Of a stretch of DNA of 64,000 nucleotides, positions 805 through 48,100 are shown in pieces. The notes below the pieces were generated by a model that did no database searches, was not told the DNA's origin, and was given only the letters and a program-made list of their open reading frames with translations. Position 1 is the stretch's first letter; the number at the start of each line of letters is the position of its first letter. Where the stretch lies: NCBI RefSeq assembly GCF_902713615.1, contig NC_052158.1:2542001-2606000 (forward strand). The letters run 5' to 3'. The position numbers and the translations under genes are program-made. Origin of the DNA: Scyliorhinus canicula. Its lineage: Eukaryota.

Positions 805-835
805 CTGATCAACGGAGTGTAGGGTTCCACAGATA
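805..835 (-). CDS. LSM2: LSM2 coding exon 3 (31 nt; (S)ICGTLHSVDQ); gene continues off the left edge
   Basis: Minus strand reads ttctttttag|T ATC TGT GGA ACC CTA CAC TCC GTT GAT CAG|gtgagg. It has a polypyrimidine tract, AG/GT sites, a phase matching exon 2, and a peptide matching vertebrate LSM2. Confidence 0.95.
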
Positions 836-1194
836 CTAAAAAGAAAAAAAAATTAAAGTGCATATATTCACATTAGAAACTAAGTCAAGTTTGCAACAAA
901 CAGCACGTGTACCTTTTCACCCACACCCTCCAACTCTTACACAGTATTCGAAACACAAACAGGCCATTCAGCCCGACTGGTTTGTGTCCTGCACAAGCCT
1001 TCTCCCACTCTGCTTCATCCGAGCCCATCGACATACCCTTTCATTCCAGTCTTTAAGCAGCTTGGCCTGAAATGGATCCTTGTCATTCCCCTCCACTACT
1101 CGTGGCAGCAAGTTCCACCTTTCAATCGCGTTCTGAGTGTTGAGGATTCTGCCCAATTCCCGACTGGATTTATTAATGACGACCTGACATTCAA

Positions 1195-1368
1195 GGGGGC
1201 TGGTTTAGCACACTGGGCTACAGCTGGCTTGTAATGCAGAATAAGGCAACAGCGCGGGTTCAATTCCCATACCGGCCTCCCTGAACAGGAGCTGGAATGT
1301 GGCGACTAGGGGCTTTTCACAGTAACTTCATTGAAGCCGACTTGTGACAATAAGCAAATTATTATTAT
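1195..1368 (+). mobile_element. tRNA-derived SINE with (ATT)n tail
   Basis: A box tggtttagc, B box ggttcaattccc, tail ggaatgtggcgactaggggcttttcacagtaac. A related copy lies on the minus strand at about 14245-14410. Confidence 0.7.
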
Positions 1369-2574
1369 GGCTCTAATTTCGTTTCGCCCACAAGTGAAAT
1401 CAAAGTAGACCGTTCACAAACCTCGATAAGAAGCACATGGAGCCAGTCACAACAAAAATAAAAGATCCTTTTACCAGAAAATGTTGGAAATACACAGGCC
1501 AAACAGGTTTTGTGGAGAGAGGAAACAGAATTAAGGTTGCAGGTCCAGTGACAATTCATCAGAAAGAAAGGACATCAAACTTCCTTTTTTACTCATGCAA
1601 TGCGATCCTCACTACCTAGACCAACATTTATTGTCCATCCCTAATTGCCCCTTGACAAGGTGGTGCTGAGCTGCCGTCTTGAAGCCGCTGCAGTCCCTGA
1701 GGTGTAGGTACACCCACCGTGCTGTTAGGGAGGGAGCTCCAGGATTTGGACCCCACAGTGGATTTGGAAGGTGCTGCCTGAGGAACCTCGGTGAGTTCCT
1801 GCAGTGAATCTTGTCGATGGTGCACACGGCTGACACTGTCCATCGGAGGTGGAGGGAATGTTTGTGGAAGGGACGCCAATCAAGTGGGGCTGCTTTGTCC
1901 TGGATGGTGTTGAGCTTCTTCGATGTCGGAGCTGAGGCAGTGAGTTCTTCATCATATGATACCCAGCTTATGACTTGATCTTGTTGCCACAGTATTTAGA
2001 TACATACTGGTCCAGTTATTGGTCAATGATGACCCTCGAACGTTGTGTTCATAATGGTACCATTCAGCGAGGTGGCAAGAATCTCCCCTGCTGGAGATAA
2101 TCCGACCTTAACCATTTTTCTCTTTCCAAAGATGCTGCCAGATCTGCTGAGTGTTCAGTAGTTTCTGCTTTTTATTTCAGATTTTCAATATCTGCAGTAT
2201 TTTGCTTCTATATTAGCCTTTTACGAAGTCTGGGCCCAATTGCATTTTCAGCATCTGGAGAATAGCTAGAGCCTCAGTAACCTCATTGTTATCAAAACGG
2301 TGTTAGTTGATTTGAGGAAAGTTAAGAATGGATTTAAAAGACTTGCATTTATATTCACGTCTTGCATGACCCTCGAACATCCTGATACAGCCAATCAAGT
2401 ATTTTTGAAGGATAATTACCAGTTCAATGTAGCAAGTAAGGCAGTCAACCAGCACACAGCAAACGTCCACACAGCGCAATGCGGTAACGACCAGATAATC
2501 CGTTTTGTTTTTGGCTGGTGTTTGAGGGGTTTAAAATATTGCCATGCGGTCTTTCACCATCGCCCAAGTAGGCA

Positions 2575-3180
2575 GACAGGTTATGCTGCAATTGTATAAG
2601 GTGTTAGTGAGGCCACACCCGGAGTATTGTGTTCAGTTTTGGTCTCCTTACTTGAGAAAGGACATACTGGCACTGGAGGGTGTGCAGAGGAGATTCACTA
2701 GGTTAATCCCAGAGCTGAAGGGGTTGGATTACGAGGAGAGGTTGAGTAGACTGGGACTGTACTCGTTGGAATTTAGAAGGATGAGGGGGGGATCTTATAG
2801 AAACATATAAAATTATGAAGGGAATAGATAGGATAGATGCGGGCAGGTTGTTTCCACTGGCGGGTGAAAGCAGAACTAGGGGGCATAGCCTCAAAATAAG
2901 GGGAAGTAGATTTAGGACTGAGTTTAGGAGGAACTTCTTCACCCAAAGGGTTGTGAATCTATGGAATTCCTTGCCCAATGAAGCAGTTGAGGCTCCTTCA
3001 TTAAATGTTTTTAAGATAAAGATAGATAGTTTTCTGAAGAATAAAGGGATTAAGGGTTATGGTGTTCGGGCTGGAAAGTGGAGCTGAGTCCACAAAAGAT
3101 CAGCCATGATCTAATTGAATGGCGGAGCAGGCTCGAGGGGCCAGATGGCCGACTCCTGCTCCTAATTCTTATGTTTTTAT
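2575..3180 (+). mobile_element. CR1/HER1 LINE 3' fragment
   Basis: Translates to YCVQFWSP...RRFTRLIP...TRGH...FFTQRVV, the CR1 ORF2 C-terminus, followed by the 3' UTR. Confidence 0.85.
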
Positions 3181-4351
3181 GACAGGACCTCAGTTTAACT
3201 TCACCGCTTAAAAAGATGAAGCCTCCAGCTGCAGCATGTCTCACGGGAGTTTCAGCCAAGATTTTTTTCTCCAGTCTCTGCATCCACAACCTTCTGACTC
3301 GGAGGCGACAGGGCTGCAAGCCACAAACCGGTGGCAATAAAGCATTTTGGAGTATTCCAGTTCTTCAATGTTATGAAAGGTTGACATTCAGAAAGCACAC
3401 AGGTGGAAAACTAATAGCTCGACAATGTTCATTTTCCTTTAACAAGCTCAACCTTTAGTGCAGGAAGTTCAGTTCTTGCTATTTGAATACTCGCCAATAG
3501 AGGCAGTGCAATAGTCCACCAGACTGATTTCTGAGGTGGCAGGATTGTCGTGATGAAGGATTGGATCGACTGGAGTTTAGAAGAATGAGAGGGGATCTCA
3601 TTGAAACGTATAAACTTCTGACAGTGCGGACAGACTGGAGGCAGGGGTAGTGTCCCGTCTGGCTGGGGGGGGGGGGGGGGGGGTTAGAACAAGGGGTCAC
3701 AGTCTCAGGATACCAGACAGGCCATTTAGGACTGAGATGCAGAGAAACTTCACTCAGAGGATGTGAAATTCGCGACCACAGAAGTCACTGAATATATTCC
3801 GGAAGGTAATATATTTCTAGACAATAGAAGCATCAAGGGGTATGGGCAGAAAGTGTGAGTATGGCATTGAGATGAAAAATCGGTCCAAACATATTGAATG
3901 GCACAGCAGGCTCATAGGGCTGAATGGCCTCCTCCTGCTCCTATTTTCTATGTTTCTCACCCCAGGAGGTAATATTGTATTGCAAAATCTATATAATCAC
4001 CTGGTGGGGGAAAGATGCAGTCGGTCCTATACTCTCTTTTCATTTCCTGCTTTATAACCAGACCGGCTTTCCAACACTCCCTGGAATTAGATTCACAGTC
4101 CGCATGTAGACAGTTTCCACAATGGTCAGTAAGGAGTTGGAAAAGGTCACACTGAAAAGTCTTTTGGAGTTTTCCTGTACTCCTTGCCCTGCAATGTGCT
4201 CAAAACCCCTTGTGAATACGCAGTCTTCAGAAGTATTGAAGAGTAAAACAGCCACAGAAGTTGACGGTGATGCCTTAAGAGCTGCTCAGACCAGCATTCC
4301 TACTGCAACATCACCTTTCAATTTAAGGCATTGTTTGCAGAGCTATGTTCT

Positions 4352-6135
4352 GGAGAGAGAGAGAAAGAGAGAGAGAGAGAAAGAGCGAGAGAAAGAGCGA
4401 CAGAGAGAGACGGACAGACCGAGAGAGAGAGAGACGGACAGACCGAGAGAGAGAGAGACGGACAGACCGAGAGAGAGAGAGACGGACAGACCGAGAGAGA
4501 GAGAGACGGACAGACCGAGAGAGAGAGAGACGGACAGACCGAGAGAGAGAGAGACGGACAGACCGAGAGAGAGAGAGACGGACAGACCGAGAGAGAGAGA
4601 GACGGACAGACCGAGAGAGAGAGAGACGGACAGACCGAGAGAGAGAGAGACGGACAGACCGAGAGAGAGAGAGACGGACAGACCGAGAGAGAGAGAGACG
4701 GACAGACCGAGAGAGAGAGAGACGGACAGACCGAGAGAGAGAGAGACGGACAGACCGAGAGAGAGAGAGACGGACAGACCGAGAGAGAGAGAGACGGACA
4801 GACCGAGAGAGAGAGAGACGGACAGACCGAGAGAGAGAGAGACGGACAGACCGAGAGAGAGAGAGACGGACAGACCGAGAGAGAGAGAGACGGACAGAGA
4901 GAGAGAGAGAGACGGACAAGACAGAGAGAGAGAGAGACGGACAGACCGAGAGAGAGAGAGACGGACAGACCGAGAGAGAGAGAGACGGACAGACCGAGAG
5001 AGAGAGAGACGGACAGACCGAGAGAGAGAGAGACGGACAGACCGAGAGAGAGAGAGACGGACAGACCGAGAGAGAGAGAGACGGACAGACCGAGAGAGAG
5101 AGAGACGGACAGACCGAGAGAGAGAGAGACGGACAGACCGAGAGAGAGAGAGACGGACAGACCGAGAGAGAGAGAGACGGACAGACCGAGAGAGAGAGAG
5201 ACGGACAGACCGAGAGAGAGAGAGACGGACAGACCGAGAGAGAGAGAGACGGACAGACCGAGAGAGAGAGACGGACAGACCGAGAGAGAGAGAGACGGAC
5301 AGACGAGAGAGAGAGAGACGGACAGACCGAGAGAGAGAGAGACGGACAGACCGAGAGAGAGAGAGACGGACAGACCGAGAGAGAGAGAGACGGACAGACC
5401 GAGAGAGAGAGAGACGGACAGGACCGACGAGAGGAGAGAGAGAGAGACGGACAGAGAGAGAGAGAGAGAGAGAGAGACGGACAGACCGAGAGAGAGAGAG
5501 AGACAGAGAGAGAGAGAGAGACACACACAGACCGAGAGAGAGACAGACAGACCGAGAGAGAGAGACACACACAGACCGAGAGAGAGAGAGACACACAGAC
5601 GAGAGAGAGANNNNNNNNNNNNNNNNNNNNNNNNNNNNNNNNNNNNNNNNNNNNNNNNNNNNNNNNNNNNNNNNNNNNNNNNNNNNNNNNNNNNNNNNNN
5701 NNNNNNNNNNNNNNNNNNNNNNNNNNNNNNNNNNNNNNNNNNNNNNNNNNNNNNNNNNNNNNNNNNNNNNNACAGACCGAGAGAGAGAGAGACAGACCGA
5801 GAGAGAGAGAGACAGACCGAGAGAGAGAGAGACAGACCGAGAGAGAGAGAGACAGACCGAGAGAGAGAGAGACAGACCGAGAGAGAGAGAGACAGACCGA
5901 GAGAGAGAGAGACAGACCGAGAGAGAGAGAGACAGACCGAGAGAGAGAGAGACAGACCGAGAGAGAGAGAGACAGACCGAGAGAGAGAGAGACAGACCGA
6001 GAGAGAGAGAGACAGACCGAGAGAGAGAGAGACAGACCGAGAGAGAGAGAGACAGACCGAGAGAGAGAGAGGCAGACCGAGAGAGAGAGAGAGGCAGACC
6101 GAGAGAGAGAGAGAGACAGACCGAGAGAGAGAGAG
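4352..6135. repeat. Compound (GA)n minisatellite (24-bp unit left of the gap, 20-bp unit right); contains the N gap 5611-5771
   Basis: Directly visible units (GA)n-cggacagacc and (GA)n-cagacc. Confidence 0.95.
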
Positions 6136-6140
6136 ATAGT

Positions 6141-7822
6141 AAGAAGTCTTACAACACCAGTTTAAAGTCCAACAGGTTTGTTTCAAACACGAGCTTTCGG
6201 AGCGCAGCTCCTTCTTCAGGTGACTGGAGAGGTATGAACCAGAAACATTTATATAGACAAAATCAGCGATGCTGGACAATGCTTGGAATGCGAGAATTTG
6301 CAGGTAATCAAATCATTACAGATCCAGAGAGAGGGATAATCACAGGTTAAAGAGGTGGGAATTGTCTCAAGCCAGAACAGTTGGTGGGATTTTGCAAGTC
6401 CAGGTCAGATGGTGGGGAGTGGATGTAATGCGACATGAATCCAAGATCCCGGTTGAGGCCGCACTCATGTGTGCGGAACTTAGCTATAAGTTTTTGCTCG
6501 GCAATTCTGCGTTGTCGCGCGTCCTGAAGGCTGCCTTGGAGAACGCTTACCCGGAAATCAGAGGCTGAATGCCCTTGACTGCTGAAGTGTTCCCTGACTG
6601 GAAGGGAACATTCCTGCCTGGTGATTGTCACACGGTGCCCATTCATTCGCTGTCGCAGTGTCTGCATAGTCTCGCCAATGTACCACGTTTCGGGGCATCC
6701 TTTCCTGCAGCGTATGAGGTAGACTACATTGGTCGAGTTGCACGAGTATGTGCCGCGTACCTGGTGGGTGGTGTTACCACGTGTAATGGTGGTATCCAAG
6801 TCGATGATCTGGCATATCTTGCAAAGATTGCCCTGGCAGGGTTGTGTGGTGTTGTGGTCGCTGTTCTGAAGGCTGGGTAATTTGCTGCAAACAATGGTTT
6901 GTTTGAGGTTGCGCGGTTGTTTGAAGGCAAGTAGTGGGGGTGTGGGGATGACCTTGGCAAGATGTTCATCTTCATTGATGATGTGTTGAAGGCTGCGAAG
7001 AAGACGTCGTAGTTTCTCCGCCCCAGGAAAGTACTGGACGACGAAGGGTACTCTGTCAGTGGTGTCCTGTGTTTGTCTTCTGAGGAGGTCGGTGCGGTTT
7101 TTTGCTGTGGCGCGTTGGAACTGTCGATCGATGAGTCGAGCGCCATATCCCATCCGTACGAGAGCATCTTTCAGCATCTGTCGGTGTCTGTAACGCTCCT
7201 CCTCGCCTGAGCAGATCCTGTGTATACAGAGGGCTTGTCCATAGGAGATGGCTTCTTTAATGTGTTTTGGGTGAAAGCTGGAGAAGTGGAGCATCGTGAG
7301 GTTGTCTGTGGGCTTGCGGTAAAGCGAAGTGCTGAGGTGACCGTCCTTGATGGAGATGAGTGTGTCCAAGAATGCAACAGAATTTGGAGAATAGTCCATG
7401 CGGAGTCTGATGGTGGGATGGAATTTATTGATCGCATCGTGTAGTCGTTTCAGTGATTCTTCGCTGTGGGTCCAAAGGTAAAAAATGTCATCGATGTATC
7501 TGGTGTATAACGTCGGTTGAAGGTCCTGTGCGGTGAGGAAATCTTGTTCAAACATGTGCATGAAGATGTTGGCATATTGAGGCGCGAATTTGGTCCCCAT
7601 GGCTGTTCCATGCGTCTGGATGAAGAATTTGTTGTCAAAGGTGAAGACGTTGTGATCTAGAATGAAGCGGATGAGTTGCAGAATTGCGTCTGGAGATTGG
7701 CAGTTGTCAGTGTTGAGGACTGAGGCTGTTGCAGCAATGCCGTCGTCATGGGGGATGCTGGTGTAGAGTGCCGAGACATGCATTGTGACGAGAAATGTTC
7801 CTGGTTCAACTGGTCCATGAGC
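6141..7822 (-). mobile_element. 5'-truncated Penelope-like element (RT + GIY-YIG endonuclease) with terminal pseudo-LTR
   Basis: Open frame with GTAMGTKFAP, RYIDD, FLD, YRKPT, VVYLIRC..WYIGET and GLNRD motifs. Confidence 0.93.
6191..6222 (-). ncRNA. Minimal hammerhead-ribozyme-like motif in the Penelope pseudo-LTR
   Basis: CTGAAGA-A-GGAGC-tgc-GCTCC-GAAA-GCT gives a CUGANGA box, a 5-bp stem II and a GAAA box. Such motifs are known in Penelope-like elements. Confidence 0.6.
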
Positions 7823-7823
7823 A

Positions 7824-7845
7824 GGAGAGAGATAGAGAGAGACAG

Positions 7846-7898
<53 letters not shown>

Positions 7899-8700
7899 GA
7901 CCGAGAGAGAGAGAGAGACAGACCGAGAGAGAGAGACAGACCGAGAGAGAGAGACAGACCGAGAGAGAGCCAGACCGAGAGAGAGAGCCAGACCGAGAGA
8001 GAGAGCCAGATCGAGAGAGAGAGCCAGACCGAGAGAGAGAGCCAGACCGAGAGAGAGAGCCAGACCGAGAGAGAGAGCCAGACCGAGAGCGAGAGCCAGA
8101 CCGAGAGAGAGAGCCAGACCGAGAGAGAGAGCCAGACCGAGAGAGAGAGAGCCAGACCGAGAGAGAGAGCCAGACCGAGAGAGAGAGCCAGACCGAGAGA
8201 GAGAGCCAGACCGAGAGAGAGACAGACCGAGAGAGAGACAGACCGACCGAGAGAGAGAGAGACCAAGAGAGAGATACAGACCGAGAGAGAGAGAGAGAGA
8301 GACAGACCGAGAGGGAGAGACAGACCGAGAGAGAGAGACAGACGAGAGAGAGAGACAGACCGAGAGAGAGAGACAGACCGAGAGAGAGAGACAGACCGAG
8401 AGAGAGAGACAGACCGAGAGAGAGAGACAGACCGAGAGAGAGAGACAGACCGAGAGAGAGAGACAGACCGAGAGAGAGAGAGACAGACCGAGAGAGAGAG
8501 AGACAGACCGAGAGAGAGCGAGACAGACCGAGAGAGAGAGGCAGACCGAGAGAGAGACAGACCGAGAGAGAGACAGACCGAGAGAGAGAGACAGACCAAG
8601 AGAGACAGACCGAGAGAAAAACATAGAAACAGAAAGAGGGGCAAGACAGAGGTAAACAGAGAGTAAGAGAGAGTGACAGATTGAGACAAACAGAGATAGG
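7824..8700. repeat. Compound (GA)n/cagacc microsatellite
   Basis: Directly visible; same motif family as 4352-6135. Confidence 0.95.
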
Positions 8701-8907
8701 GCCATTGCAGAAAGGAGGTGAGAGCTTCCACTAATAACATTACTTATATCACCCCATCGTCATGCAAGAATGTGGAATTCAACCACAAACAGGTCAGCCA
8801 TCGTCTTATTGAATGGCGGAGCAGGCTCGGAGGGTTTGAGTGACCTACTCCCGGGGCTCCTATCTCTTTATCTGCTGTCGTCAACAAACAAGACAAGGTG
8901 CACTCAC

Positions 8908-8975
8908 CTGAGATCATTCTTTAACTCCACAACAACATCTTTCCCAACCAGGGATTTGAAAAACGAATAAAATAA
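8908..8975 (-). CDS. LSM2: LSM2 coding exon 2 (68 nt; LFYSFFKSLVGKDVVVELKNDL(S))
   Basis: Minus strand reads ctgttttag|TTATTTTATTCG...AATGATCTCAG|gtgagt. The translation matches the N-terminus of the U6 snRNA-associated Sm-like protein LSm2. Confidence 0.96.
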
Positions 8976-9399
8976 CTAAAACAGAAGATTTGAAAAAAAG
9001 AGATTCGTAAATATGAGTCAGGGCATTCATTTGACACCAAAACAGCTTAACTTCAAAACAAGCAAAGCGTGGCCGATTGGGCAAAACTTTGAGAACCTTC
9101 TATCCAGTCGGTAGGGCGTCAGGAAATGAAGATTTCATGTCCCACAACAGATTGGAATTCATTATATGAACATCGCTCTGCAGCACATAATAAAGGCTGG
9201 CACTAAAGCTCATGGTGGAGGAGCACTGTACTATCAGAGGCACCATCGTTCAGATGGGATATTAAATTGAAGTGCCTGTCTGCCATCCTCAAATGAACAG
9301 AAAAGATCCCCGTAGTTATTTAAACGTGAACATGAATTTCACCCAGTTTCCTGACCAACATCATTTCCTCAAGATTACCACCAATCTAGCATGTTAAGA

Positions 9400-9785
9400 A
9401 ATCTTAAAGTCCCAAAGCACTTGAGGATGAAAGAAGTGTATTTGAAGTGTAATCACTGTTGTAATGCAGGAAAACACATCTGCCAATTTCTACACCGAGA
9501 ACTCCACAAATAGCAATGTGACAACAATCAGATCATCAGCTTTTGTGATATTAATTGAGGGATACATATCGATGAGGGTAAATTCGCCGACATTTCTTCA
9601 AAACAGTGTCTCTGCACCAACTACATCCCTGGGGCAGGGCAGATTTAATAATGGCACCTCCAGTGCAGCACTCAGCACTGGAGAACGTCCTGGCACAGCT
9701 TTTTGTGCTCCAGTGGAATTTGACTGCATCAACTTTTGATTCAGAGGACAATGTGCCACCAACTGAGCTATAGCTAGCACTCAAC
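9400..9785 (-). mobile_element. Ancient AmnSINE/DeuSINE-like element
   Basis: Degenerate tRNA-like head near 9780 and a body resembling 54750-55030 and 2350-2560. Confidence 0.5.
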
Positions 9786-10356
9786 CACCAAAATAAAGAA
9801 ATTAACTGGTCATTCAGGCCACAGATTCACCTTGAAGTCAATCACCACCCCAGGCTTAGACTGCCCACCCAGTGCTGAGCCAACACTGCTCCCCACTCAG
9901 ACACTGGTGGACAGGGATAACCTCACCTCTGTGGGTGCTCCACCCACCTCAGTGGTTAGGTTCACCCGAACCCCACCTCCCCTTAATCGTCAACTCACCC
10001 AAAGCACTGCTCCCAGGTGAGCCTCAATCCACACCCACCCAATTAGCCGACCTGGGCTTGCACCCATGCCTCCTCCCCAATCCCGCACCTCTGCCATCAA
10101 ACCTAACCCCCGCCCTCTCCTCTATCTCCCCCCCCTACCCCACACCAACCTCGCATCGATCTCTACACCACTGTCCCAATCTCGCAGCTGCCCTCGTGCC
10201 ACCTCCCCAATAATGCACCAACCCCCATACCAGCTCCTCAATCAGGCACGGATCCCCATGCAACTTCCCCTATCTAAGTATGCCCAAACACTCCCCCAGG
10301 TTTTGGCTATCTCCGAGCTGGGGCCTCCCCGTCTACGTGGACAGCACAGTAGCAGT

Positions 10357-10625
10357 GGGCAGTAGCATGGTGGTTAGCACTGTGGCTTCACAGCACCAGG
10401 GTTACGGTCTGTGCAGAGTGTGCACGTCCCTCCGCCCCCCCCCCCCCCCCGTGTTTGCGTGGGTTTCCTACGGTTTCCTCCCACAAGTCCCGAAAGACGT
10501 GCTGTTAGGAGAATTGGACATTCTGAATTCTCGCTCTGCGTACCCGAACAGGAGCCGGAATGTGGCGACTGAGGGATTTTCACAGTAATTTCATTAAGCC
10601 TACTTGTGATAATAAAGATTATTAT
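10357..10625 (+). mobile_element. HE1-like SINE with the ...gataataaagattatt tail
   Basis: gggcagtagcatggtggttagcac head, ggtttcctcccacaagtcc core, tail shared with 1195-1368 and 35055-35376. Confidence 0.75.
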
Positions 10626-10626
10626 C

Positions 10627-10885
10627 TCCGAGCTGGGGCCTCCTTGTCTCCCTCCAGGCTGGGGTCTCCCTCCGGGCTGGGGGTCTCCCTCCGGGCTGGG
10701 GGTCTCCCTCCGGGCTGGGGGTCTCCCTCCGGGCTGGGGGTCTCCCTCCGGGCTGGGGCCTACCTCCGGGCTGGGGCCTCCTCGTCTACTGCCGAGCTCG
10801 GGGTCTCCCTCCGAGCTGGGGCCTCCCTGTCTCCCTCCGAGCTGGGGCCTCCGTCTACCTCCGAGCTGGGGCCTCCCTGTCTACC
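10627..10885. repeat. GC-rich ~20-bp minisatellite (ctccgggctgggggtctccc) in LSM2 intron 1
   Basis: Directly visible tandem units. Confidence 0.85.
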
Positions 10886-10899
10886 TCCTTTCTGGTTCA

Positions 10900-11220
10900 T
10901 CCTATTTATCTCCGACCCGGGCCCCGCTCGCTCTCGGCTCCCCCCACCCGGTGCCCGCTCCCCCCGCCCGGTGCCCGCTCTCCGGCTCCTCTCACCATGA
11001 TGGCGGCAGCGGCGGCGGTTGGCGCGGACCCGATTGAAAGCAGTCAGCGCTGGCCTCCCGCTATCGCGAGAACACCCAGAAGCCCCGCCCACCTGGCCGT
11101 CGCCCCGGCGCGCAGGCGCGGGTCCGGCTTCTCCCGCCTGTTCGGGCTTTGATTGACAGCAGCGATTCCCCACGTGCTGCATGCAGCAAGAGCTCACCCC
11201 GCCCTCAGTGCTGTGCAAAG
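10900..11220 (-). promoter_or_regulatory. LSM2 CpG-island promoter and 5' UTR
   Basis: CpG-rich stretch with GC boxes (ccccgccc near 11084 and 11197) around and upstream of the ATG exon. No obvious TATA box. Confidence 0.75.
10996..10998 (-). CDS. LSM2: LSM2 exon 1 coding part (initiator ATG only)
   Basis: Minus strand reads gccgccatcATG|gtgaga, a Kozak-like context followed directly by a GT donor, inside a CpG island. It joins exon 2 in phase 0 to give MLFYSFFK. Confidence 0.9.
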
Positions 11221-11249
11221 TATTTAGCAAAGGCTGAAACAGCAAGGTA

Positions 11250-29410: not shown

Positions 29411-29769
29411 AATTCATGGGATGTGGGCCAGCTTTTAGTGTCATTAACCTGCGTGGTTTGCTCAGCCATTTTGGGGAGGTAGTTAAGATTCAACAATATT
29501 GTTCTGGGTCTGGAGTCACATGTAGGCCAGACCGGGTAAAGATGGCAGATTTCCTTCCCTAAAAAACCAGAGGATTAGAGAACCAGATAGTTTCTTTCCA
29601 ACAACAATCGTCAACGGTTTCCTGGTCATCATCGCTCCAGGTTTGTTTTAAATTCAAATTTCACCATCAGCCGTGGTGGTATTTGAACCCAGGTCCCCAG
29701 ACGACTAACCAAACTCTCTGAATTATTAGTCCAGAGACAATACCACTGCCTCCCACGACATGGCTAATT

Positions 29770-30840: not shown

Positions 30841-32760
30841 TCAGTCGACTTCCTCAATTGTAGGCCCGCTAGAAGGATCCTTTCTGACAGGATCAGAGAA
30901 TGGTCCTTCTGGCATTCCGCCCTGGTGGAGCTTGGCAGTGATGGGTTTGCATACTTTTTCCAAATCTTTCAGTTGCTGGTCAAAGTCTTCCTTCTCACCC
31001 GCTTGGTTTGCCTCCAGCCAGGATATGGCCTGGTTACACTTCTCAATCACTTTGTTTTTGTCTTCCTCGCTGATCTTGCCTTTCATTTTCTCCTCCTCTA
31101 CCGAGCTCTTCATGTTGAATGCGTATGACTCCAGGGAGTTCTTGGCTGAAATCTTATCACGCTGCTGGTCATCCTGGGTTTTGTACCTTTCTGCTTCCTG
31201 CACCATCCTCTCAATTTCCTCCTTGCTCAGCCGACCCTTGTCATTGGTGATGGTAATCTTGCTCTCTTTGCCGGTGCTCTTGTCCACGGCCGACACGTTC
31301 AGGATGCCGTTGGCATCAATGTCAAAGGTGACCTCGATCTGTGGTACTCCGCGTGGTGCAGGGGGAATCCCACTGAGGTCAAATTTGCCCAGGAGGTTGT
31401 TGTCCTTGGTCATGGCTCTTTCTCCTTCATACACCTGAATCAGGACGCCTGGTTGACTGTCAGAATAAGTGGTGAAGATCTGGGTCTGCTTGGTGGGAAT
31501 GGTGGTGTTCCGCTTAATGAGTGTGGTCATCACCCCTCCTGCTGTTTCGAGACCCAATGAGAGAGGAGTGACATCCAATAGTAGAAGATCTTGGACATTC
31601 TCCGACTTATCCCCCATCAGAATAGCCGCTTGGACAGCCGCCCCATAGGCCACGGCTTCATCAGGATTGATGCTCTTGTTCAGGTCTCTGCCATTGAAGA
31701 AATCTTGCAGAAGTTTCTGGATCTTGGGGATGCGAGTGGAGCCCCCGACCAAGACCACATCATTAACTTGAGCTTTATCCATCTTGGCATCTCTCAGAGA
31801 CTTCTCCACTGGTTCCAATGTGCCTCTGAAGAGGTCAGTGTTAAGTTCTTCAAACCGAGCCCTGGTGATGGAGGTGTAAAAGTCTATGCCTTCAAACAGA
31901 GAGTCAATCTCCACACTGGCTTGGGTGCTGGAAGACAGGGTTCTCTTGGCTCTCTCGCAGGCTGTCCTCAATCTCCTGACCGCCCTCTTGTTCTCACTGA
32001 TGTCCTTCCTGTACTTACGCTTGAATTCCTCAATGAAGTGATTGACCATGCGGTTATCAAAGTCCTCTCCTCCCAAGTGGGTGTCACCCGCTGTGGATTT
32101 CACTTCAAAGATCCCGTCGTCAATGGTGAGAACAGACACGTCGAAGGTGCCACCTCCCAAGTCAAAGATGAGAACATTGTGTTCCCCTCTGCCCTTCTTG
32201 TCCAGGCCGTAGGCAATGGCAGCTGCTGTTGGCTCATTGATGATCCGTAGGACATTGAGGCCAGCGATCACCCCGGCATCCTTGGTTGCTTGGCGCTGGG
32301 AGTCATTGAAGTAAGCAGGCACAGTGATGACAGCGTTGCTGACAGTGTAGCCCAGATAGGCCTCAGCAATCTCCTTCATCTTAGTCAGCACCATGGAGGA
32401 AATCTCCTCAGGGTAAAAGGTTTTATCTTCTCTTTTGTACTCGACCTTCACCTTGGGCTTCCCCGCATCGTTCACCACCTGGAAGGGCCAGTGCTTCATG
32501 TCAGACTGGACCACCGGGTCAGTGAACTTCCTCCCGATGAGCCTCTTGGCATCAAAGATGGTGTTGGGTGGGTTGAGAGCCACCTGGTTCTTGGCGGCGT
32601 CTCCGATGAGCCTCTCGGTGTCGTTGAAGGCCACGTAGCTGGGGGTGGTGCGGTTGCCCTGGTCATTGGCGATGATCTCCACCTTGCCGTGCTGGAAGAC
32701 CCCCACGCAGGAGTAGGTGGTGCCCAGGTCAATGCCAATGGCTGTTCCCCTGCTTGCCAT
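30841..32760 (-). CDS. hsp70: Heat shock 70 kDa protein, cytosolic, intronless (paralog 1; 639 aa, [13 protein letters not shown]...GPTIEEVD)
   Basis: Has the [20 protein letters not shown] and [13 protein letters not shown] family signatures and a C-terminal EEVD. The first ATG is at 32760 (the track's upstream TTG start is not used). TATA box upstream; ATTAAA at 30619-30624. Confidence 0.97.
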
Positions 32761-35376: not shown

Positions 35377-35378
<2 letters not shown>

Positions 35379-36974: not shown

Positions 36975-38885
36975 TCAATCGACCTCCTCAATTGTTGGAC
37001 CACTGAAGGAATTTCCTTTGCCAGCCTGGTCTCCAAAGCCGACGGGCACATCGCCCTGGTATAGTTTAGCAAGAATGGGATTGCAGGCATTTTCCAGCTT
37101 CCTCAGTTGCTGCTCAAACTCATCCTTGTCTGCCTCCTGGTGCGCCTCCAGCCAGGATATAGCCTGGTTACACATTTCAATGACCTTCTGCTTGTCTTCC
37201 TCGCTGATCTTGTCTTTCATTTTCTCCTCCTCCACCGAACTCTTCATGTTGAAGGCGTACGACTCCAGGGAGTTCTTGGCTGCAATCAATTTGCACTGAT
37301 GGTCATCTTGGCCCTTGTACTTTTCTGCTTCCTGCACCATCCTCTCAATTTCCTCCTTGCTCAGCCGACCCTTGTCATTGGTGATGGTAATCTTGCTCTC
37401 TTTGCCGGTGCTCTTGTCCACGGCCGACACGTTCAGGATGCCGTTGGCATCAATGTCAAAGGTGACCTCGATCTGTGGTACTCCGCGTGGTGCAGGGGGA
37501 ATCCCACTGAGGTCAAATTTGCCCAGGAGGTTGTTGTCCTTGGTCATGGCTCTCTCTCCTTCATACACCTGAATCAGGACGCCTGGTTGACTGTCAGAAT
37601 ACGTGGTGAAGATCTGGGTCTGCTTGGTGGGAATGGTGGTGTTACGCTTGATGAGCGCGGTCATCACCCCGCCTGCTGTTTCAAGACCCAACGAGAGGGG
37701 AGCAACATCCAGGAGAAGTAAATCCTGGACATTCTCCGACTTATCCCCCATCAGAACAGCCGCTTGGACAGCCGCTCCATAGGCCACGGCTTCATCAGGA
37801 TTGATGCTCTTGTTCAGCTCTTTGCCGTTGAAGAAATCTTGCAGCAGTTTCTGGATCTTGGGGATGCGAGTGGAGCCCCCGACCAAGACCACATCGTGGA
37901 TCTCTGATTTGTCCAACTTCGCGTCTCTCAGAGCTTTCTCCACTGGTTCCAGAGTGCCTCTGAACAGGTCAGAATTCAGCTCCTCAAACCGAGCCCTGGT
38001 GATGGAGGTGTAAAAGTCTAAACTTTCAAACAGAGAGTCAATCTCAATACTGGCTTGGGTGCTGGAAGACAGGGTTCTCTTGGCTCTCTCGCAGGCTGTC
38101 CTCAGTCTCCTGACCGCCCTCTTGTTCTGACTGATGTCCTTCCTGTACTTACGCTTGAACTCCTCAATGAAATGATTGACCATGCGGTTATCAAAGTCCT
38201 CGCCTCCCAAGTGGGTGTCACCCGCTGTGGATTTCACTTCAAAGATCCCGTCGTCAATGGAGAGAACAGACACGTCGAAGGTGCCACCTCCCAAGTCAAA
38301 GATGAGAACATTGTGTTCCCCTCTGCCCTTCTTGTCCAGGCCGTAGGCAATGGCAGCTGCTGTTGGCTCATTGATGACACGGAGGACATTGAGGCCAGCG
38401 ATCACCCCGGCATCCTTGGTTGCCTGGCGCTGGGAGTCATTGAAGTAAGCAGGCACAGTGATGACAGCGTTGGTGACGGTGTGTCCCAGGTAGGCCTCAG
38501 CCGTCTCCTTCATCTTAGTCAGCACCATGGAGGAGATCTCCTCAGGGTTAAAGGTTTTATCCTCCCCCTTGTACTCGACCTTCACCTTGGGCTTCCCCGC
38601 GTGGTTCACCACCTCAAAGGGCCAGTGCTTCATGTCAGACTGGACCAGAGGGTCGTCAAACCTCCTCCCGATTAGCCTCTTGGCATCAAAGACTGTGTTC
38701 TGGGGATTGAGAGCCACCTGGTTCTTGGCAGCGTCTCCGATGAGTCTCTCAGTTTTGTTGAAGGCCACGTAGCTGGGGGTGGTGCGGTTGCCCTGGTCAT
38801 TGGCGATGATCTCCACCTTGCTCTGCTGGAAGACCCCCACGCAGGAGTAGGTGGTGCCCAGGTCGATGCCAATGGCTGCTGGCAT
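36975..38885 (-). CDS. hsp70: Heat shock 70 kDa protein, cytosolic, intronless (paralog 2; 636 aa)
   Basis: Uninterrupted ORF with all three HSP70 signatures and [14 protein letters not shown] at 36672-36667. Confidence 0.97.
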
Positions 38886-40215: not shown

Positions 40216-43200
40216 TGATGCACTATCAATTGCGACAAGACGAGAGTAGAGAGTAATCAAAGCTTTATTACGCAGAGATGTGGAGCCTCCCGCAGCTGTT
40301 GCCGAAATGGCTGCAGCTCGGAGAGCCGACACATTTATACTCCGCCTACTGGGCGGAGCCAGCAGGGATCTACCCCCGTACCTGTAGTACAGGGGCCTTA
40401 CCATAATACCCTTGTATGCAGTATATAATACAACAGTGGTGACTGCCACATTCACCCCCTGTTAAAAAAAAGAGTCCAGCGGGGTGGTGGAAACTATTTA
40501 CATACAGGTTGTTAAAAAAATTTTGAAAAAGTTTACAAATTTAGACGGTTGGGCGCCTTGATCCGCCGTTGCGAGCGCCGCAGGTGTGTTGTTGATGCCG
40601 GCGTTGGCTCGATCATCGGTGACTCCGGGAGCGTGTCGACCTCATCTTCATCCATGGGTGGGACGAAGGGGAGGGTGGATCATCCTGGAGCGGGGGCTGT
40701 GGCGGGGTGCTCTGGGGGAAGGGAGGGTGGTGCCAGGGCAGAGGGGGCAGTGTGTAGGGACCCAGCAGGTGCCAGGTCCCAAAGGGAGACTGTGTCAGAG
40801 ACCCAGTCACTGTGGAAGTAAGCAGGGAAACTGAACAGAGCAAAGATGATGTTAAGGGCTTTGAAGACGGTGGCAGACGTCATGTCAGGGCATGGGATGG
40901 CGAAGGGGAATCTCGAGTACTCGTCAACCACATTGAGAAAATACGTGTTGCAGTCGGTGGAGGGGAGGGTCCCTTTGAAGTCCACGCTGAGGCGTTCAAA
41001 GGGGCGGGAGGCCTTCACCAGGCTTGCACAGTCTGGCCGGTAGAAGGGCGGTTTACACTCCGCACAGACCTGGCAGTCTCTGGTGATAGCCCTGACTTCC
41101 TCGATGGAGTGGGGCAGATTACCGGCCTTTATGAAGTGATAAAAGTGGGTGACCCCTGGGTAACAGAGATCGTTGTGCAGGGTGCGGAGTCGGTCCACTT
41201 GTGTGCTGGCAAATGTACCTCAGGATAGGGCAACGGGGGGGGGGGGGGGGGGGGGGGGGGGTCGTTGAGCTTAGCGGGGTGATACAAAATCCGTAATTGT
41301 AGGTGGAGAGCTCGATCCTCCACCTCAAGATTTTAGCATTTTTGATCTTGCCCCGCTGTGTGTTAAACATGAAGGCTACCGACCATTGGTCAGTGAGGAG
41401 AGTGAATCTCCTGCCGGCCAGGTAATGCCTCCAGTGCTGCACAGCTTCTACGATGGCTTGGGCCTCCTTTTCAACAGAGGAGTGCCAAATTTCGGAGGCA
41501 TGGAGGGTGGGAGAAAAGAATGCCACGGGTCTGCCTGCCTGGTTGAGGGTGGCGGCCAGAGCGACGTCTGATGCATCGCTCTTTACTTGGAATGGTAACG
41601 TCTCGTCGACCGTGTGCATCGCGGCCGTGGCGATGTCGGCCTTGATACGGTTCAAGGCCTGGTGAGCCTCGGCCGTCAGTGGGAAAGCAGTGGATTGAAT
41701 GAGTGGTCGGGCCTTGTCCGCATAGTTTGGGACCCATTGGCCGTAGTACAAAAAGAACCCCAGGGCATCGTTTGAGGGCCTTGGGGCAGTGGGGGAGGGA
41801 GAGTTCCATGAGGGGACACAGGCGATCGGGGTCGGACCCTAGAACTCCGTTCTGAACCACATAGCCGAGGATGGCTACAAATTTAGACGGTTGGGCGCCT
41901 TGATCCGCTGTTGCAAGCGCCGCAGGTGTGTTGTTGATACCGGCGTTGGCTCGATCATCAGTGACTCCGGGAGCGTGTCGACCTCATCTTCATCCATGGG
42001 TGGGATCAAGGGGACGGTGGATCATCCTGGAGCGGGGGAAGAGTGAATCTCCTGCAGGCCAGGTAATGCCTCCAGTGCTGCACAGCTTCTATGATGGCTT
42101 GAGCGTCCTTTTCAACAGAGGAGTGCCGAATTTCGGAGGCATGGAGGGTGGGAGAAAAGAATGAGCACACACTTCTCCTTGTTGGAGGTTAGGTTAAGGA
42201 ATTTGGCAGTGTGGAGGAATTTGGAAAGGTTAACGTCGTGGTCCTGCTAGTCGTGGCCACAGATGGTGACGTTGTCCAGGTACGGGAAAGTGGCCCGCAG
42301 TCTGTACCGTTCAACCATTCGGTCCATCTCCCGTTGGAAGACCGAGACCCCGTTAGTGACGCCAAAGGGAATCCTAAGGAAATGGCAAAGGTGGCCATCC
42401 GCTTCAAATGTGTGAGGGGAGCAAGATGGCAGCGCTCACCTAACCTGCACGAGTTGTGAGGGGAGCAAGATGGCGACGCCCACGGGCCGCACGAGGTCTG
42501 CGGGGAGGAAGATGGCGGCGCCGGGGGGTCGCACATGGGGGGCGCCGGGGCAACAACGGCAACCGAGTGGGCCTGGCACACAGCAGCAAAATGTCCTTTC
42601 TTACCGCAGGCCTTGCAGAGCGCGCTCCTTGCAGGTCAGCGTTGTCGGGGGTGCTTTGACTGTCCAGAGGAGTAGACCTTGGGTCCCCCGGAGTTGTGTG
42701 GTTGTCGCATGGCGCTGGCCTGGGGTTGGCTGGGGGGCGGTTGCTGATGGGGTAGGGCGTTCTCTGTCGGGGTCCACGATGTCCAGGAGTGGCAGGCCGC
42801 GCGGTGGGGGGCATACGCTTGAATATTGCGTGAGGCGACCATGAGCGAGAGTGCTAGTTTCTTGGTCGGCGCAAGGTCGAGGGTAGCCCCTTCTAAGAGT
42901 CGCTGGCGGATGTAGGCCGACTCTATGCCTGTAACAAGCGCGTCTCTAAGTAGCAAGTCTGAATGTTCAGAGGCTGAGACGGCCTGGCAATCGCAGTCTC
43001 ACTAGGAGGTGCAGGGCCAGAAATCCTCCACAGACTCACCGGGGAGTTGATGCCGCGGTGAGAGGAGGTGCCTGGCGTAGGTCTTGTTGGTCTGCTGCAT
43101 GTAGCTCTCCTTCAGTTGCGCCATGGCCTCAGCGTATGTCCGCGTGTCCCAGATGAGGGGGAAGATGTCTGAGCTCAGGCGCGTGTAGAGGATCTGGAGC

Positions 43201-43599: not shown

Positions 43600-44898
43600 G
43601 TTTGCACATTCTCCCCTTGTCTGCGTAAGTTTCACCCCCACAATCTCAAATAGTGCAGGTTAGGTGGATTGCTAAATTGCCCATTAATTGGAAAAAATAT
43701 TTGGGTACTCAATTTATTCAAAAAAAAATTTACAGTGCAGAAGGAGGCCATTCAGCCCATTGAATCTGCACCAGCCCTTGGAAATAGCACCCTACTTAAA
43801 AGGTAATGCAGTAACCTCACCTAACCTTTTGGACACGAAGGGCAATTTATCATGGTCAATCCACCTAACCTGCACATCTTTGGACTGTGGAAGGAAACCA
43901 GAGCACCCGGAGGAAACCCACTCAGACACTGGGAAATCGTATAAACTCCACACAGTCACCACCCGAGGCCGGAATTGAACCCGGGTCCCTGACGCTGTGA
44001 GGCAGCAGTGCTGTGACCTCCGCCCCTCCCCCCCCCCTAATCCCCGAAGCCCCCTTCCTTCGTTGTTTCAGGGCCCTTTTCTGGGCCGTTCACTGTGCCC
44101 TGGGTAGTCATTTGTTATTTACAAGTGGGCGATGCCTCCCCTCCCCCTTTTATTGTTGGTCCCTCCCTCTTCATCCCGATACCCCGGAGACCGCCATTGA
44201 GGGGCACGGCTTCAACCTCACCCCCACAACCTTGGACATTGCCTCGGGGAAGGCTGTCCAGAACCCGACAGATCTGGAGCTTGCCCGAACATGTGGGTAT
44301 GATTGGCTGGGCCTCCCTGGCATCGTTCACACATATCCTCCACCACCTTACTCATTCTGGTTCTTGTCAAGTGCGATGAGGAGGTGGAGTTGACCCTGTA
44401 CAGTGCTTTGCTCCACAGTCCCTACCCTATTTCCACCCCGAGCTCTTCCTCCCAATTTTCCCCAAGTTTCGTCCAGCGGGAAGCACGTCCTTTCTAAAGG
44501 TCGTCTGTACACATCCCCACAGTGTGTCCAAAAACTTTAATGGGACTCTCCAGGAGTTGGAAATAGAAGCGCTCAGACAATACAGTACACGCATCCTCAT
44601 ACCATTTCCCAAAGGAAACATTCTAAACGTGGAATATTAGCAACAGGAGGAGCAACCTGTTGACTTCTGTTCAAAGTAAAGATGTGTGCACCCCTTTCCG
44701 ATCATCTTTAAACATTCTGCAACATCCAATTAGAAATGTAATTTATTCCGGAATTAATTGAACTGTATTGTTGCTCCCTCGGACGATTCGTAGAATCTTT
44801 GAAAGTTTATAACAGGGGCAGACCTCTCTTTTTTTTTATTCCAATGAATAAAAACAATTGCCCACATCCCATGAACAAATTAGAAAGCAATAAACTAT

Positions 44899-45234
44899 CT
44901 AGAATCTACAGTGCAAAAATAGGCTACTCGGCCCATCGCGTCTGCATCGGCCCTTGGAAAGAGCACCCTGCTTAAGCCCACACCTCCACCCTATCCCCAT
45001 GACACAGCAACCCCACCTATCCTTTTTGGACACTAAGGGAAATTGATCATGGCCAATCCACCTAACCCGCACATCTTTGGACTTGTGGGAGGAAAGCGGA
45101 GCACCCGGAGGAAACCCACGCACACACGGGGAGAACGTGCAGACTCCGCACAGACAGTGACCCAAGCCGGGAATCGAACCTGGGACCCTGGAGCTGTGAA
45201 GCAACAGTGCGAGTCACTGTGCTGCCATGCCACC
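44899..45234 (-). mobile_element. HE1-type SINE with CR1-like tail
   Basis: Complete head, core and tail. Confidence 0.85.
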
Positions 45235-45661
45235 CTATAGTTGGCTGTTGCAACAGTAATAATGGGAAGTGGTTGACAAATTAAGGTGGGCTGAATTGTT
45301 AATCTGTGCAACTAAACACGAATGTACCAGGAAGAAAGAAAAGAGAACGAGTATAAAACAAGTTAATTGAAAATTTCAGATTTAATTTCACACAATTAAA
45401 TAGTAGCACAAACAACATTCATTTATGGAAAATTGACAGAGTTAAAATATGTCCAGGCACCTCACAATAACTAAGAACGATAGCAAATATGCATCATATA
45501 CATAAAAAACATTTCCTTTCCTTCAAACTTAATGGAACAAAGGCACAGCAAGATGTTAAATAAGAACCTCACTTGTCCAACATTTTAGGAAAAATCAATG
45601 TCCATATAACCATTTGTGCAATATTTAATTCAAGGCATTAAACAAAGTTAATTCCGGCCTT

Positions 45662-47593
45662 TCAATCCACCTCCTCCACAGTGGGTCCTGTGGGATAGGC
45701 ATTCCCAGCCTGGGATCGGCAAGAGCTCCCAGCTGCTGCTGCTGCTCCTCCTTGGTACAGGTCGGCAATGATGGGATTGCAGAGTTTTTCCAGCTCTTTC
45801 AGCTGGAACTCAAACTCCTCCTTCTCTACCATCTGATTGTTCTCCAGCCACTGTATTGCCTGCTCACACTGCTCAATGATTTTCTTCTTATCTGCCTCAC
45901 TGATCTGATTCCTCACACTCTGCTCCTCCACCCAGCTCTTCATGTTGAAGGCGTATGACTCCAGGGAGTTCTTGGCTGCGATCCTCTGTCGCTGGACTTC
46001 ATCCTGGCTTTTGTACTTTTCTGCTTCCTGCACCATCCTCTCAATCTCCTCCTTGCTCAGCCGGCCCTTGTCGTTGCTGATGGTGATTTTGTTGGATTGG
46101 CCGGTGCTCTTGTCAACAGCAGAAACATTGAGGATGCCGTTGGCATCAATGTCAAAGGTGACCTCGATCTGTGGCACCCCACGGGGGGCAGGGGCAATGC
46201 CACTCAACTCAAATTTGCCCAGGAGGTTGTTGTCCTTGGTCATGGCTCTCTCTCCTTCGTACACCTGAATGAGGACCCCGGGCTGGTTCTCAGAGTAGGT
46301 GCTGAAGGTCTGGGTCTGCTTGGTGGGAATGGTGGTGTTACGCTTGATGAGTGTGGTCATCACCCCTCCTGCGGTCTCGAGACCCAGAGACAGGGCAGCG
46401 ACATCCAGGAGAAGTAAATCCTGGACATTCTCCGACTGATCCCCCATCAGAACAGCCGCTTGGACAGCCGCCCCATAGGCCACGGCTTCATCAGGATTGA
46501 TGCTCTTGTTCAGCTCTTTGCCGTTGAAGAAATCTTGCAGCAGTTTCTGGACCATGGGGATGCGAGTGGAGCCCCCGACCAAGACCACATCGTGGATGTG
46601 TGATTTCTCCATCTTGGCGTCTCTCAGAGCTTTCTCCACTGGTTCCAGAGTGCCTCTGAACAGGTCAGAATTCAGCTCCTCAAACCGAGCCCTGGTGATG
46701 GAGGTGTAAAAGTCTATGCCTTCAAACAGAGAGTCAATCTCAATACTGGCTTGGGTGCTGGAAGACAGGGTTCTCTTGGCTCTCTCGCAGGCTGTCCTCA
46801 GTCTCCTGACCGCCCTCTTGTTCTCACTGATGTCCTTCTTGCATTTACGCTTGAACTCCTCAATGAAGTGACTGACCATGCGGTTATCAAAGTCCTCTCC
46901 TCCCAAGTGGGTGTCACCCGCTGTGGATTTCACCTCAAAGATCCCGTCGTCAATGGAGAGAACAGACACGTCGAAGGTGCCACCTCCCAAGTCAAAGATG
47001 AGAACATTGTGTTCCCCTCTGCCCTTCTTGTCCAGGCCGTAGGCAATGGCAGCTGCTGTTGGCTCATTGATGACACGGAGGACATTGAGGCCAGCGATCA
47101 CCCCGGCATCCTTGGTTGCCTGGCGCTGGGAGTCATTGAAGTAAGCAGGCACAGTGATGACAGCGTTGGTGACGGTGTGTCCCAGGTAGGCCTCAGCCGT
47201 CTCCTTCATCTTAGTCAGCACCATGGAGGAGATCTCCTCAGGGTTAAAGGTTTTATCCTCCCCCTTGTACTCGACCTTCACCTTGGGCTTCCCCGCCTGG
47301 TTCACCACCTGGAAGGGCCAGTGCTTCATGTCAGACTGGACCAGCGGGTCGTCAAACCTCCTCCCGATGAGCCTCTTGGCATCAAAGATGGTGTTGGGTG
47401 GGTTGAGAGCCACCTGATTCTTGGCAGCGTCTCCGATGAGCCTCTCGGTGTCGTTGAAGGCCACGTAGCTGGGGGTGGTGCGGTTGCCCTGGTCATTGGC
47501 GATGATCTCCACCTTGCCGTGCTGGAAGACCCCCACGCAGGAGTAGGTGGTGCCCAGGTCAATGCCAATGGCTGTTCCTTTAGCTGGTGGCAT
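45662..47593 (-). CDS. hsp70: Heat shock 70 kDa protein, cytosolic, intronless (paralog 3; 643 aa, [14 protein letters not shown]...GPTVEEVD)
   Basis: HSP70 signatures and EEVD end. First ATG at 47593. TATAAA at 47750-47745. ATTAAA at 45386-45381 in an AT-rich 3' UTR. Confidence 0.97.
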
Positions 47594-47627
47594 CTTGAGT
47601 CCTGATCCAAGCCGAGTGAATTCAGTC

Positions 47628-47651
47628 GCTGCTGCTGCTGCTGCTGCTGCT
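47628..47651 (-). repeat. (CAG)n/(GCA)n trinucleotide run in the HSP70-3 5' UTR
   Basis: About 8 units between the TATA box and the ATG. Confidence 0.9.
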
Positions 47652-47739
47652 GTGAAGTTTTGCTGATGCAGTGATCCAGTTGCCACCTGCTCTGTGCTCC
47701 GGGCGGGAGGGTGATTGTGACTGGGAGCCGCTCAGCTCT

Positions 47740-48100
47740 TGTCCTTTATATCGGCTGAGAGCGGCCGAGTGGCGGCGCCCGGAGGCTGATTGACGGCGGC
47801 ACGGACCAATGGGGGCGGGGGAGGTGACGTCCCGCGGAATGTTCGGAAGCGGCGGCCAATGAGAGCGCGGGGCGGTGATGTCACCGCGGAATGTTGGCCA
47901 ATGAGAGCGCGGGGCGGTGATGTCACCGCGGAATGTTGGCCAATGAGAGCGCGGCGGGCGGGCGGCAGGCGGAGAGTTGGAGAGTTTTGTGGAAGGTTCG
48001 AGTCCCGGGAAGAAAGTTGTGGAAAGTTGCGGGAGGCGGGGACGGGAATGGACTGTGAGCAGCGGGAAGCGGCTGGAAGCGGGAAGGAGGAGCGGAGCAA
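47740..48100 (-). promoter_or_regulatory. Promoter of HSP70 paralog 3 with HSE-like elements and a tandem 42-bp module
   Basis: TATAAA; CCAAT at 47806, 47856, 47898 and 47940; gGAAtgTTCg at 47836-47845; gGAAggTTCg and GAAagTTGtgGAAagTTG at about 47990-48030. Confidence 0.85.

Follow-up and report, generated by a model that had tools for sequence, protein, structure and literature searches.

In human, LSM2 lies inside the major histocompatibility complex (MHC), within its class III region, between VARS1 on one side and the chaperone genes HSPA1L, HSPA1A and HSPA1B on the other. Is the same neighbourhood present in a shark, and how far back would it then reach? This question is raised by a stretch of 64,000 nucleotides from chromosome 13 of the catshark Scyliorhinus canicula (NC_052158.1, positions 2,542,001 to 2,606,000), here called the window, whose own positions are counted from its first letter. 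An earlier note made from its letters had proposed that three hidden micro-exons of LSM2 stand next to three intronless HSP70 genes in MHC class III gene order. LSM2 is a housekeeping gene and encodes a subunit of the Lsm2-8 and Lsm1-7 rings. Our analysis indicates that the window is very probably the catshark orthologue of the VARS1-LSM2-HSPA1L/1A/1B stretch in human MHC class III, with an HSP70 unit whose likely history is set out below.

The 5′ part of LSM2 is found on the minus strand. Exon 1 (10996..11099) consists of 5′ untranslated region and the ATG only (10998-10996), directly followed by GTGAGA with the donor GT at 10995-10994; its upstream end at 11099 was inferred from the RefSeq gene end in a published table and the coordinate offset given below, and assembled contigs reach at least 11024. 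Intron 1 (8976..10995, 2020 nt) has GT..AG ends. Exon 2 (8908..8975, 68 nt), bordered by a polypyrimidine tract and AG before it and GTGAGT after it, encodes residues 2-24, ending in the first two bases of codon 24. Beyond intron 2 (836..8907), exon 3 (805..835, 31 nt) has TTTTTAG on its acceptor side and GTGAGG on its donor side (donor GT at 804-803), and its peptide ends in ...HSVDQ. The coding pieces of 3, 68 and 31 nt join in frame to 102 nt or 34 codons. In a search of all solved-structure sequences, the spliced peptide was identical to residues 1-34 of human LSm2 (34/34, E 8.5e-18), and the seven matches listed, with E values up to 0.01, were LSm2 chains without exception, the non-human ones at about 1e-10. 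Neither exon 4 nor any later exon was found in window positions 1-804; the gene continues past the window start, and residues beyond 34 belong to exons outside it. At the same position in two other elasmobranchs, the sevengill shark Heptranchias perlo and the sawfish Pristis pectinata, the gene product is a 95-residue protein of the family PF01423.

Window positions 8700-11300 were compared with assembled contigs from two runs and with the raw reads of two oligo-dT RNA runs. Each of the two contig runs, which derive from different samples and studies, contained one contig (1284 or 1396 nt, depth about 40) that spans exactly 8908-8975. Both contigs join 8975 to 10996, skipping the 2020 nt of intron 1 with the ends CT..AC, which correspond to GT..AG on the minus strand. 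Past 8908, both go on with 30 letters that match the reverse complement of exon 3 exactly (window 806-835), and the junction 8908>835 was deduced from these loose-end letters. The two junctions that the earlier note had named beforehand as its test were thus seen in contigs of two studies. Intron depth in the contig runs was 0-3, except for a repeat at 10353-10700. A DNA origin of the spliced contigs is unlikely because of the intron-free GT..AG joints and the 20-fold excess in depth over the introns. Canonical splice sites, complete identity to the first 34 residues of human LSm2 and spliced contigs hence agree on the three micro-exons as originally proposed.

Intron 2 holds an assembly gap (a run of N, 5611-5771) between two GA-rich minisatellite arrays of one family, the first (4371-5610) built of a 24-nt unit and the second (5772-6136) of a 20-nt unit, along with a third GA-rich array (7834-8610) and a decayed reverse-transcriptase open reading frame (ORF; 6347-8740). 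Since the gap lies wholly within the intron, the reading frame across it is irrelevant, and both flanks belong to one transcription unit, as the contigs splice exon 2 to exon 3. The repeat within intron 1 (10353-10700, or more narrowly about 10370-10625) is of the short interspersed kind, and a tRNA-like GGTTCGATTCCCGGC motif occurs among the loose-end letters that flank it. The repeat exhibited very high depth on both strands in the RNA runs (hundreds to thousands in the contigs), evidently arising from many genomic copies.

Upstream of LSM2 and on its strand, the window carries three HSP70 genes, which we name by their distance from LSM2. The proximal gene (30841..32760, minus strand) encodes 639 residues and is flanked by TATAAA at 32903-32898 and AATAAA at 30624-30619. 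The middle gene (36975..38885, minus strand) encodes 636 residues with a short N-terminus and has a TAAATAA box and a poly(A) signal at 36672-36667. The distal gene (45662..47593, minus strand) encodes 643 residues, with TATAAA at 47750-47745 and a poly(A) signal at 45386-45381. All three are intact, uninterrupted single ORFs without introns. Their proteins match the Pfam HSP70 family PF00012 end to end in one stretch (positions 1-597/599, E about 1e-260), terminate in EEVD and share 83-89% pairwise identity. ORFs, Pfam matches and C-termini therefore bear out the earlier claim of three intronless HSP70 genes on the strand of LSM2. No fourth copy or fragment was detected in the window by tblastn; two further catshark copies outside it are 98.8% identical to the distal gene. 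As single ORFs that separate from HSC71/HSPA8 in the tree described below, the three are best placed with the cytosolic HSP70s of the stress-type, intronless HSPA1 group.

Each HSP70 gene has a region with CCAAT and GC boxes upstream and a poly(A) signal downstream. A perfect three-unit heat-shock element was not present anywhere in the window; one-mismatch or two-unit matches were all that was seen upstream of the proximal and distal genes, and none was seen upstream of the middle gene. The DNA upstream of the distal gene also includes 2.4 repeats (47854-47954) of a 42-bp unit composed of an inverted CCAAT, a GC box, TGACATCA and GAACATTCC. The same unit recurs about 7 kb further upstream as 4.9 repeats (55099-55303) with no gene attached.

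The place of these genes in published annotation was established by comparison with supplementary file 2 of Veríssimo et al. 2023 (PMC10751288), which gives the gene list of catshark NC_052158.1 (chromosome 13) from NCBI annotation release 100. In this table, all on the minus strand, vars1 (2,277,928-2,349,569) is followed by several short loci including a histone cluster, by smx5 (2,538,249-2,553,099) and by the HSP70-sized loci LOC119975699 (2,572,591-2,575,141), LOC119975700 (2,578,650-2,581,018) and LOC119976049 (2,587,363-2,589,727); a fourth copy, LOC119976051 (2,623,899-2,626,226), lies outside the window. In zebrafish, LSM2 goes by the name smx5 (PMC1309616). After a shift by about 2,542,000, the published 3′ ends come to lie some 20-35 nt beyond the window's poly(A) signals, and the start of the distal gene falls 23 nt downstream of its TATA box. 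The spacing of the published vars1, smx5 and HSP70 loci agrees with that of the window genes within tens of bases, and the protein of the middle gene is encoded exactly in the NCBI assembly GCA_902713615.2. Because the published smx5 locus covers the micro-exons, these belong to an annotated gene and are not hidden, contrary to the earlier description; the gene has been in RefSeq as smx5 since 2021. The linkage of LSM2 and HSP70 genes in a shark MHC class III stretch is thus already contained in public annotation and in the 2023 map of MHC chromosomes, where HSP70 and LSM2 have no occurrences in the main text and the genes are listed in the supplement (PMC10751288). A literature search found no published description of a conserved unit of three HSP70 genes and LSM2.

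The remainder of the chromosome places the block among MHC genes, and the majority of human MHC genes share one chromosome in elasmobranchs (PMC10751288). On NC_052158.1, daxx (1.08 Mb), kifc1 (1.25 Mb), gpank1 (1.54 Mb), csnk2b (1.83 Mb), abhd16a (1.89 Mb) and vars1 (2.28 Mb) precede the window, and cchcr1 (2.84 Mb), neu1 (7.13 Mb), PRRT1 (7.35 Mb), PPT2 (7.89 Mb), notch4 (17.6 Mb), rxrb (34.8 Mb), B2M (41.4 Mb), BRD2 (41.5 Mb) and the group of psmb9, psmb8, MHC-Ia and TAP2 (51.7-53 Mb) follow it. The class III genes of this series lie on the same chromosome as the window, in line with the claim of an orthologous class III block; a scaffold devoid of other class III genes had been named as the finding that would speak against it. 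Of the flanking genes expected earlier, vars1, neu1 and MHC-Ia were recovered on the chromosome; NEU1 and SLC44A4 were not adjacent to the HSP70 genes. Past the catshark HSP70 genes, additional HSP70 copies are followed by cchcr1, with neu1 about 4.5 Mb away. In the elasmobranch tables, the far side of the HSP70 genes is likewise taken up by further copies of HSP70, by TRIM-like arrays and by genes of the class I framework (cchcr1, tcf19, a POU gene, mdc1) instead of NEU1-SLC44A4 (PMC10751288). The human gene order is kept on the LSM2/VARS1 side only.

Compared with the human order VARS1-LSM2-HSPA1L-HSPA1A-HSPA1B-NEU1, the catshark block is alike in that HSP70 genes stand directly upstream of LSM2 with VARS1 on the other side, that the nearest HSP70 gene lies on the strand of LSM2, that these genes lack introns and belong to the HSPA1 type, and that the first 34 LSm2 residues are identical. 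In human, HSPA1A and HSPA1L are arranged head-to-head, with VARS, LSM2, NEU1 and SLC44A4 as neighbours (PMC5865164), whereas the shark trio is co-oriented, all three genes sharing the strand of LSM2 as the earlier note had pointed out. Unlike in human, a histone cluster separates LSM2 from VARS1, cchcr1 and extra HSP70 copies take the place of NEU1 and SLC44A4, and distances are much larger. The copies themselves are probably independent duplications.

The arrangement recurs in other elasmobranchs. In the sawfish (CM019888.1), three HSP70 genes (629, 636 and 639 residues, in the direction of transcription) precede the LSM gene (95 residues) on one strand, with coordinates as in PMC10751288. 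The sevengill shark (CM068675.1) likewise carries HSP70 genes of 640, 636 and 640 residues followed by the LSM gene of 95 residues (PF01423) on one strand. In its LSM2, the first coding exon holds the ATG alone, the peptides of exons 2 and 3 are identical to those of the catshark, and intron 2 is ungapped and 3.1 kb long. The genes on the smx5 side of the sawfish locus largely correspond to the human class III set on the LSM2 side. After smx5 they comprise a histone cluster, vars1, a SAPCD-like gene, abhd16a, nfkbil1, csnk2b, CLIC1 and ddah2, continued by NCR3, AIF1, PRRC2A, DDX39B, APOM and BAG6 (PMC10751288). In the white shark, two HSP70-sized loci lie just upstream of smx5 on its strand with vars1 downstream, and a separate array on the opposite strand was labelled HSPA by the authors (PMC10751288). 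The same-strand unit of distal, middle and proximal HSP70 and LSM2 in sharks and rays is a small new piece and leaves the main claim a known one.

LSM2 exons were not found within 10 kb downstream of an HSP70 pair of the skate Rhinoraja, nor in the first Heptranchias locus examined; a further search located LSM2 in this shark. The HSP70 genes of Xenopus and gar that we examined have unrelated genes as neighbours, which makes them paralogues from other loci and of no use for the comparison, and an axolotl MHC paper mentions neither LSM2 nor HSP70. Two of the gene models are unusual. The distal model of the sawfish (6803-8692 of the retrieved locus, 629 residues) lacks the EEVD end, and a middle-type gene of Rhinoraja longicauda (1159-3075 of the retrieved locus) ends in IYEVD and has a very long branch (0.34); decay or mis-assembly may account for either.

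To place the HSP70 copies, a maximum-likelihood tree of 46 proteins was rooted on an HSC71 row, with support given as ultrafast bootstrap and Shimodaira-Hasegawa-like approximate likelihood ratio (SH-aLRT) values. The HSP70-type genes were set apart from the three rows of the HSC71/HSPA8 type (the rooting row and two lizard entries) at 100/100, and all elasmobranch copies formed one group (98/97) that excluded the HSPA1 genes of marsupials and cetaceans as well as amphibian, lungfish, coelacanth and ray-finned fish genes. Within the elasmobranchs, a proximal clade (85/90) comprised the catshark proximal gene, position 3 of Heptranchias and of Pristis and one skate gene. A middle clade (86/95) contained the catshark middle gene, position 2 of Heptranchias and of Pristis and one skate and one devil-ray gene; its proteins all have 636-638 residues, the same short N-terminus and a common C-terminal tail. 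These two clades join at 100/98. The third, a distal or array clade (99/96), held the catshark distal gene with the two other catshark copies, position 1 of Heptranchias and of Pristis and multicopy genes of many sharks and rays, which group mostly by species or close lineage, the three sawfish rows not all falling together. Since the clades sort by position across sharks and rays, positional orthology predates the shark-ray split. The phylogeny called for by the earlier note thus yielded the separation from HSC71/HSPA8 and an elasmobranch clade; the HSPA1L and HSPA2 rows it had named were not among the sequences.

Synonymous divergence (dS) was compared as well. Within species, paralogues differed by dS of 0.25-0.33 in the catshark, 0.16-0.34 in the sevengill shark and 0.36-0.40 in the sawfish; between positional orthologues, dS was higher (0.44-0.77), and nonsynonymous divergence (dN) showed the reverse tendency. 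The lower dS of paralogues together with the reversal in dN points to gene conversion and selection for type-specific residues. Ratios dN/dS of 0.06-0.16 between positional orthologues correspond to purifying selection. As an observation on the database searches, a UniRef entry named Molecular chaperone DnaK from the bacterium Kangiella spongicola was 86-88% identical to catshark HSP70, which fits contamination of that bacterium's assembly with animal DNA and not a bacterial gene.

Several points weigh against orthology with the human class III stretch and against the history of the HSP70 genes proposed here. The two raw oligo-dT RNA runs yielded a depth of 1-2 on the 5′ exons of LSM2 and zero junction reads, and the runs that gave the spliced contigs are only presumed to be RNA. 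The window was equated with NC_052158.1 coordinates through the spacing of its genes and through one protein that matched exactly. Linkage to MHC class I and II is loose, since these genes share the chromosome at a distance of about 39-50 Mb. The tree comprised no HSPA1L, HSPA2, HSPA6 or holocephalan sequences, gene conversion can distort it and make paralogues look younger, and in the approximately unbiased (AU) test a tree grouping the distal clade with mammalian HSPA1 was not rejected (p 0.15), so that a duplication specific to elasmobranchs is not secure. The distance to class I and II genes, tens of Mb, would also suit a paralogous MHC region, just as the LSM2 exons might in principle be a chance match or the remnant of a pseudogene. 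We consider either of these extremely improbable: the same chromosome carries B2M, BRD2, TAP2, PSMB8, MHC-Ia, notch4, neu1 and csnk2b, the exons are spliced and expressed in contigs, and a 95-residue LSM product is called at the same place in two other elasmobranchs.

The relationship between the shark and human HSP70 genes is the more delicate issue. Equal copy number and the location beside LSM2 could suggest a one-to-one orthology of the shark genes with HSPA1L, HSPA1A and HSPA1B, the trio then being ancestral, which appears very improbable to us. The duplication that gave HSPA1A and HSPA1B arose in placental mammals, monotremes and marsupials having one copy plus HSPA1L (PMC5865164); the human and shark trios are for this reason not one-to-one. 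Orientations also differ between shark and human, more copies of the distal type lie beyond the window in the catshark, and the shark genes form a clade of their own; the number three is a likeness without common ancestry. A subtler alternative would place the split between proximal/middle and distal genes before cartilaginous fish and bony fish diverged. In that case, HSPA1L would have its true orthologues in the LSM2-proximal shark genes, and gene conversion in the stem lineage would have drawn these into one clade with the other shark copies. The shared position and strand of the proximal gene and HSPA1L relative to LSM2, the AU test and the evident gene conversion are all compatible with it; the best tree, in which elasmobranch copies exclude marsupial and cetacean HSPA1 (HSPA1L not being in the tree), speaks against it, and we regard it as unlikely. 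The reading that we prefer, that the shark trio arose by duplication within cartilaginous fish, independently of HSPA1L/1A/1B, is likely but not proven from the sequences.

Taken together, the following history is proposed. LSM2 (smx5) is an ordinary expressed gene with an ATG-only first coding exon and subsequent exons of 68 and 31 nt. Upstream of it, and transcribed towards it, lie three cytosolic HSP70 genes without introns, of the HSPA1 (non-HSC70) type; they are independent genes, each with its own TATA/CCAAT promoter and poly(A) signal. This same-strand unit of four genes is ancestral to sharks and rays, and parsimony, applied to the adjacency common to mammals and elasmobranchs, would place the linkage of HSP70, LSM2 and VARS1 in the ancestor of jawed vertebrates, in agreement with the early origin put forward in the earlier note. 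The three shark copies most likely duplicated within cartilaginous fish and would since have exchanged sequence by gene conversion, with type-specific residues kept by purifying selection. More tentatively, the proximal and middle genes might be an old elasmobranch-wide pair with promoters of their own lacking clear heat-shock elements, held in fixed order and orientation with LSM2 since about the shark-ray split through specialisation (constitutive or tissue-specific, functionally parallel to mammalian HSPA1L/HSPA2), and the distal type alone might be amplifiable and heat-inducible; we consider this conceivable, with the odds against it.

The DNA between LSM2 and the proximal gene, between the HSP70 genes and at 48-64 kb consists of retroelement remains (reverse transcriptase, endonuclease, integrase, RNase H, zinc knuckle) and minisatellites. 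In these intervals no other cellular genes were found, and there were no Rfam matches. An ORF of 634 codons (50196-52100) was rejected as an HSP70 copy, as it has no Pfam match and is made of tandem repeats. Between the middle and distal genes lies a decayed long terminal repeat retroelement with integrase and RNase H ORFs (40680-41751), and an ORF of a long interspersed nuclear element with endonuclease and reverse transcriptase is located at 55917-57869. About 1 kb downstream of the proximal gene, ARAGORN called a 91-nt sequence resembling tRNA-Ile(AAT) (29669-29759), which Rfam did not report at the gathering threshold and which may be the head of a short interspersed element or an intron-bearing tRNA. 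A 25-nt minisatellite at 59399-60217 (33 copies) creates an ORF of 316 codons whose weak Cornifin-like Pfam matches are an artefact of the repeat.

Two published systems frame these results. The elasmobranch MHC maps (PMC10751288) cover the same locus and tabulate smx5, vars1 and HSP70 loci for catshark, white shark and sawfish; they differ from the present analysis in that the conserved three-position unit of HSP70 genes and LSM2 and its phylogeny are not described. The mammalian genes HSPA1A and HSPA1B (PMC5865164) are similar to the shark genes as tandem paralogues of the inducible type kept alike by gene conversion and purifying selection. Unlike this pair, the shark genes persist as three positional types for about the whole age of the elasmobranch crown despite conversion, and the distal type also forms lineage-specific arrays. 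Splicing and synteny support the view that the HSP70-LSM2-VARS1 neighbourhood existed already in the common ancestor of jawed vertebrates, which fits the published view that most human MHC genes reside on one elasmobranch chromosome. Beside the mammalian HSPA1 cluster, the shark unit offers a second, independent case of how tandem chaperone genes keep distinct identities.

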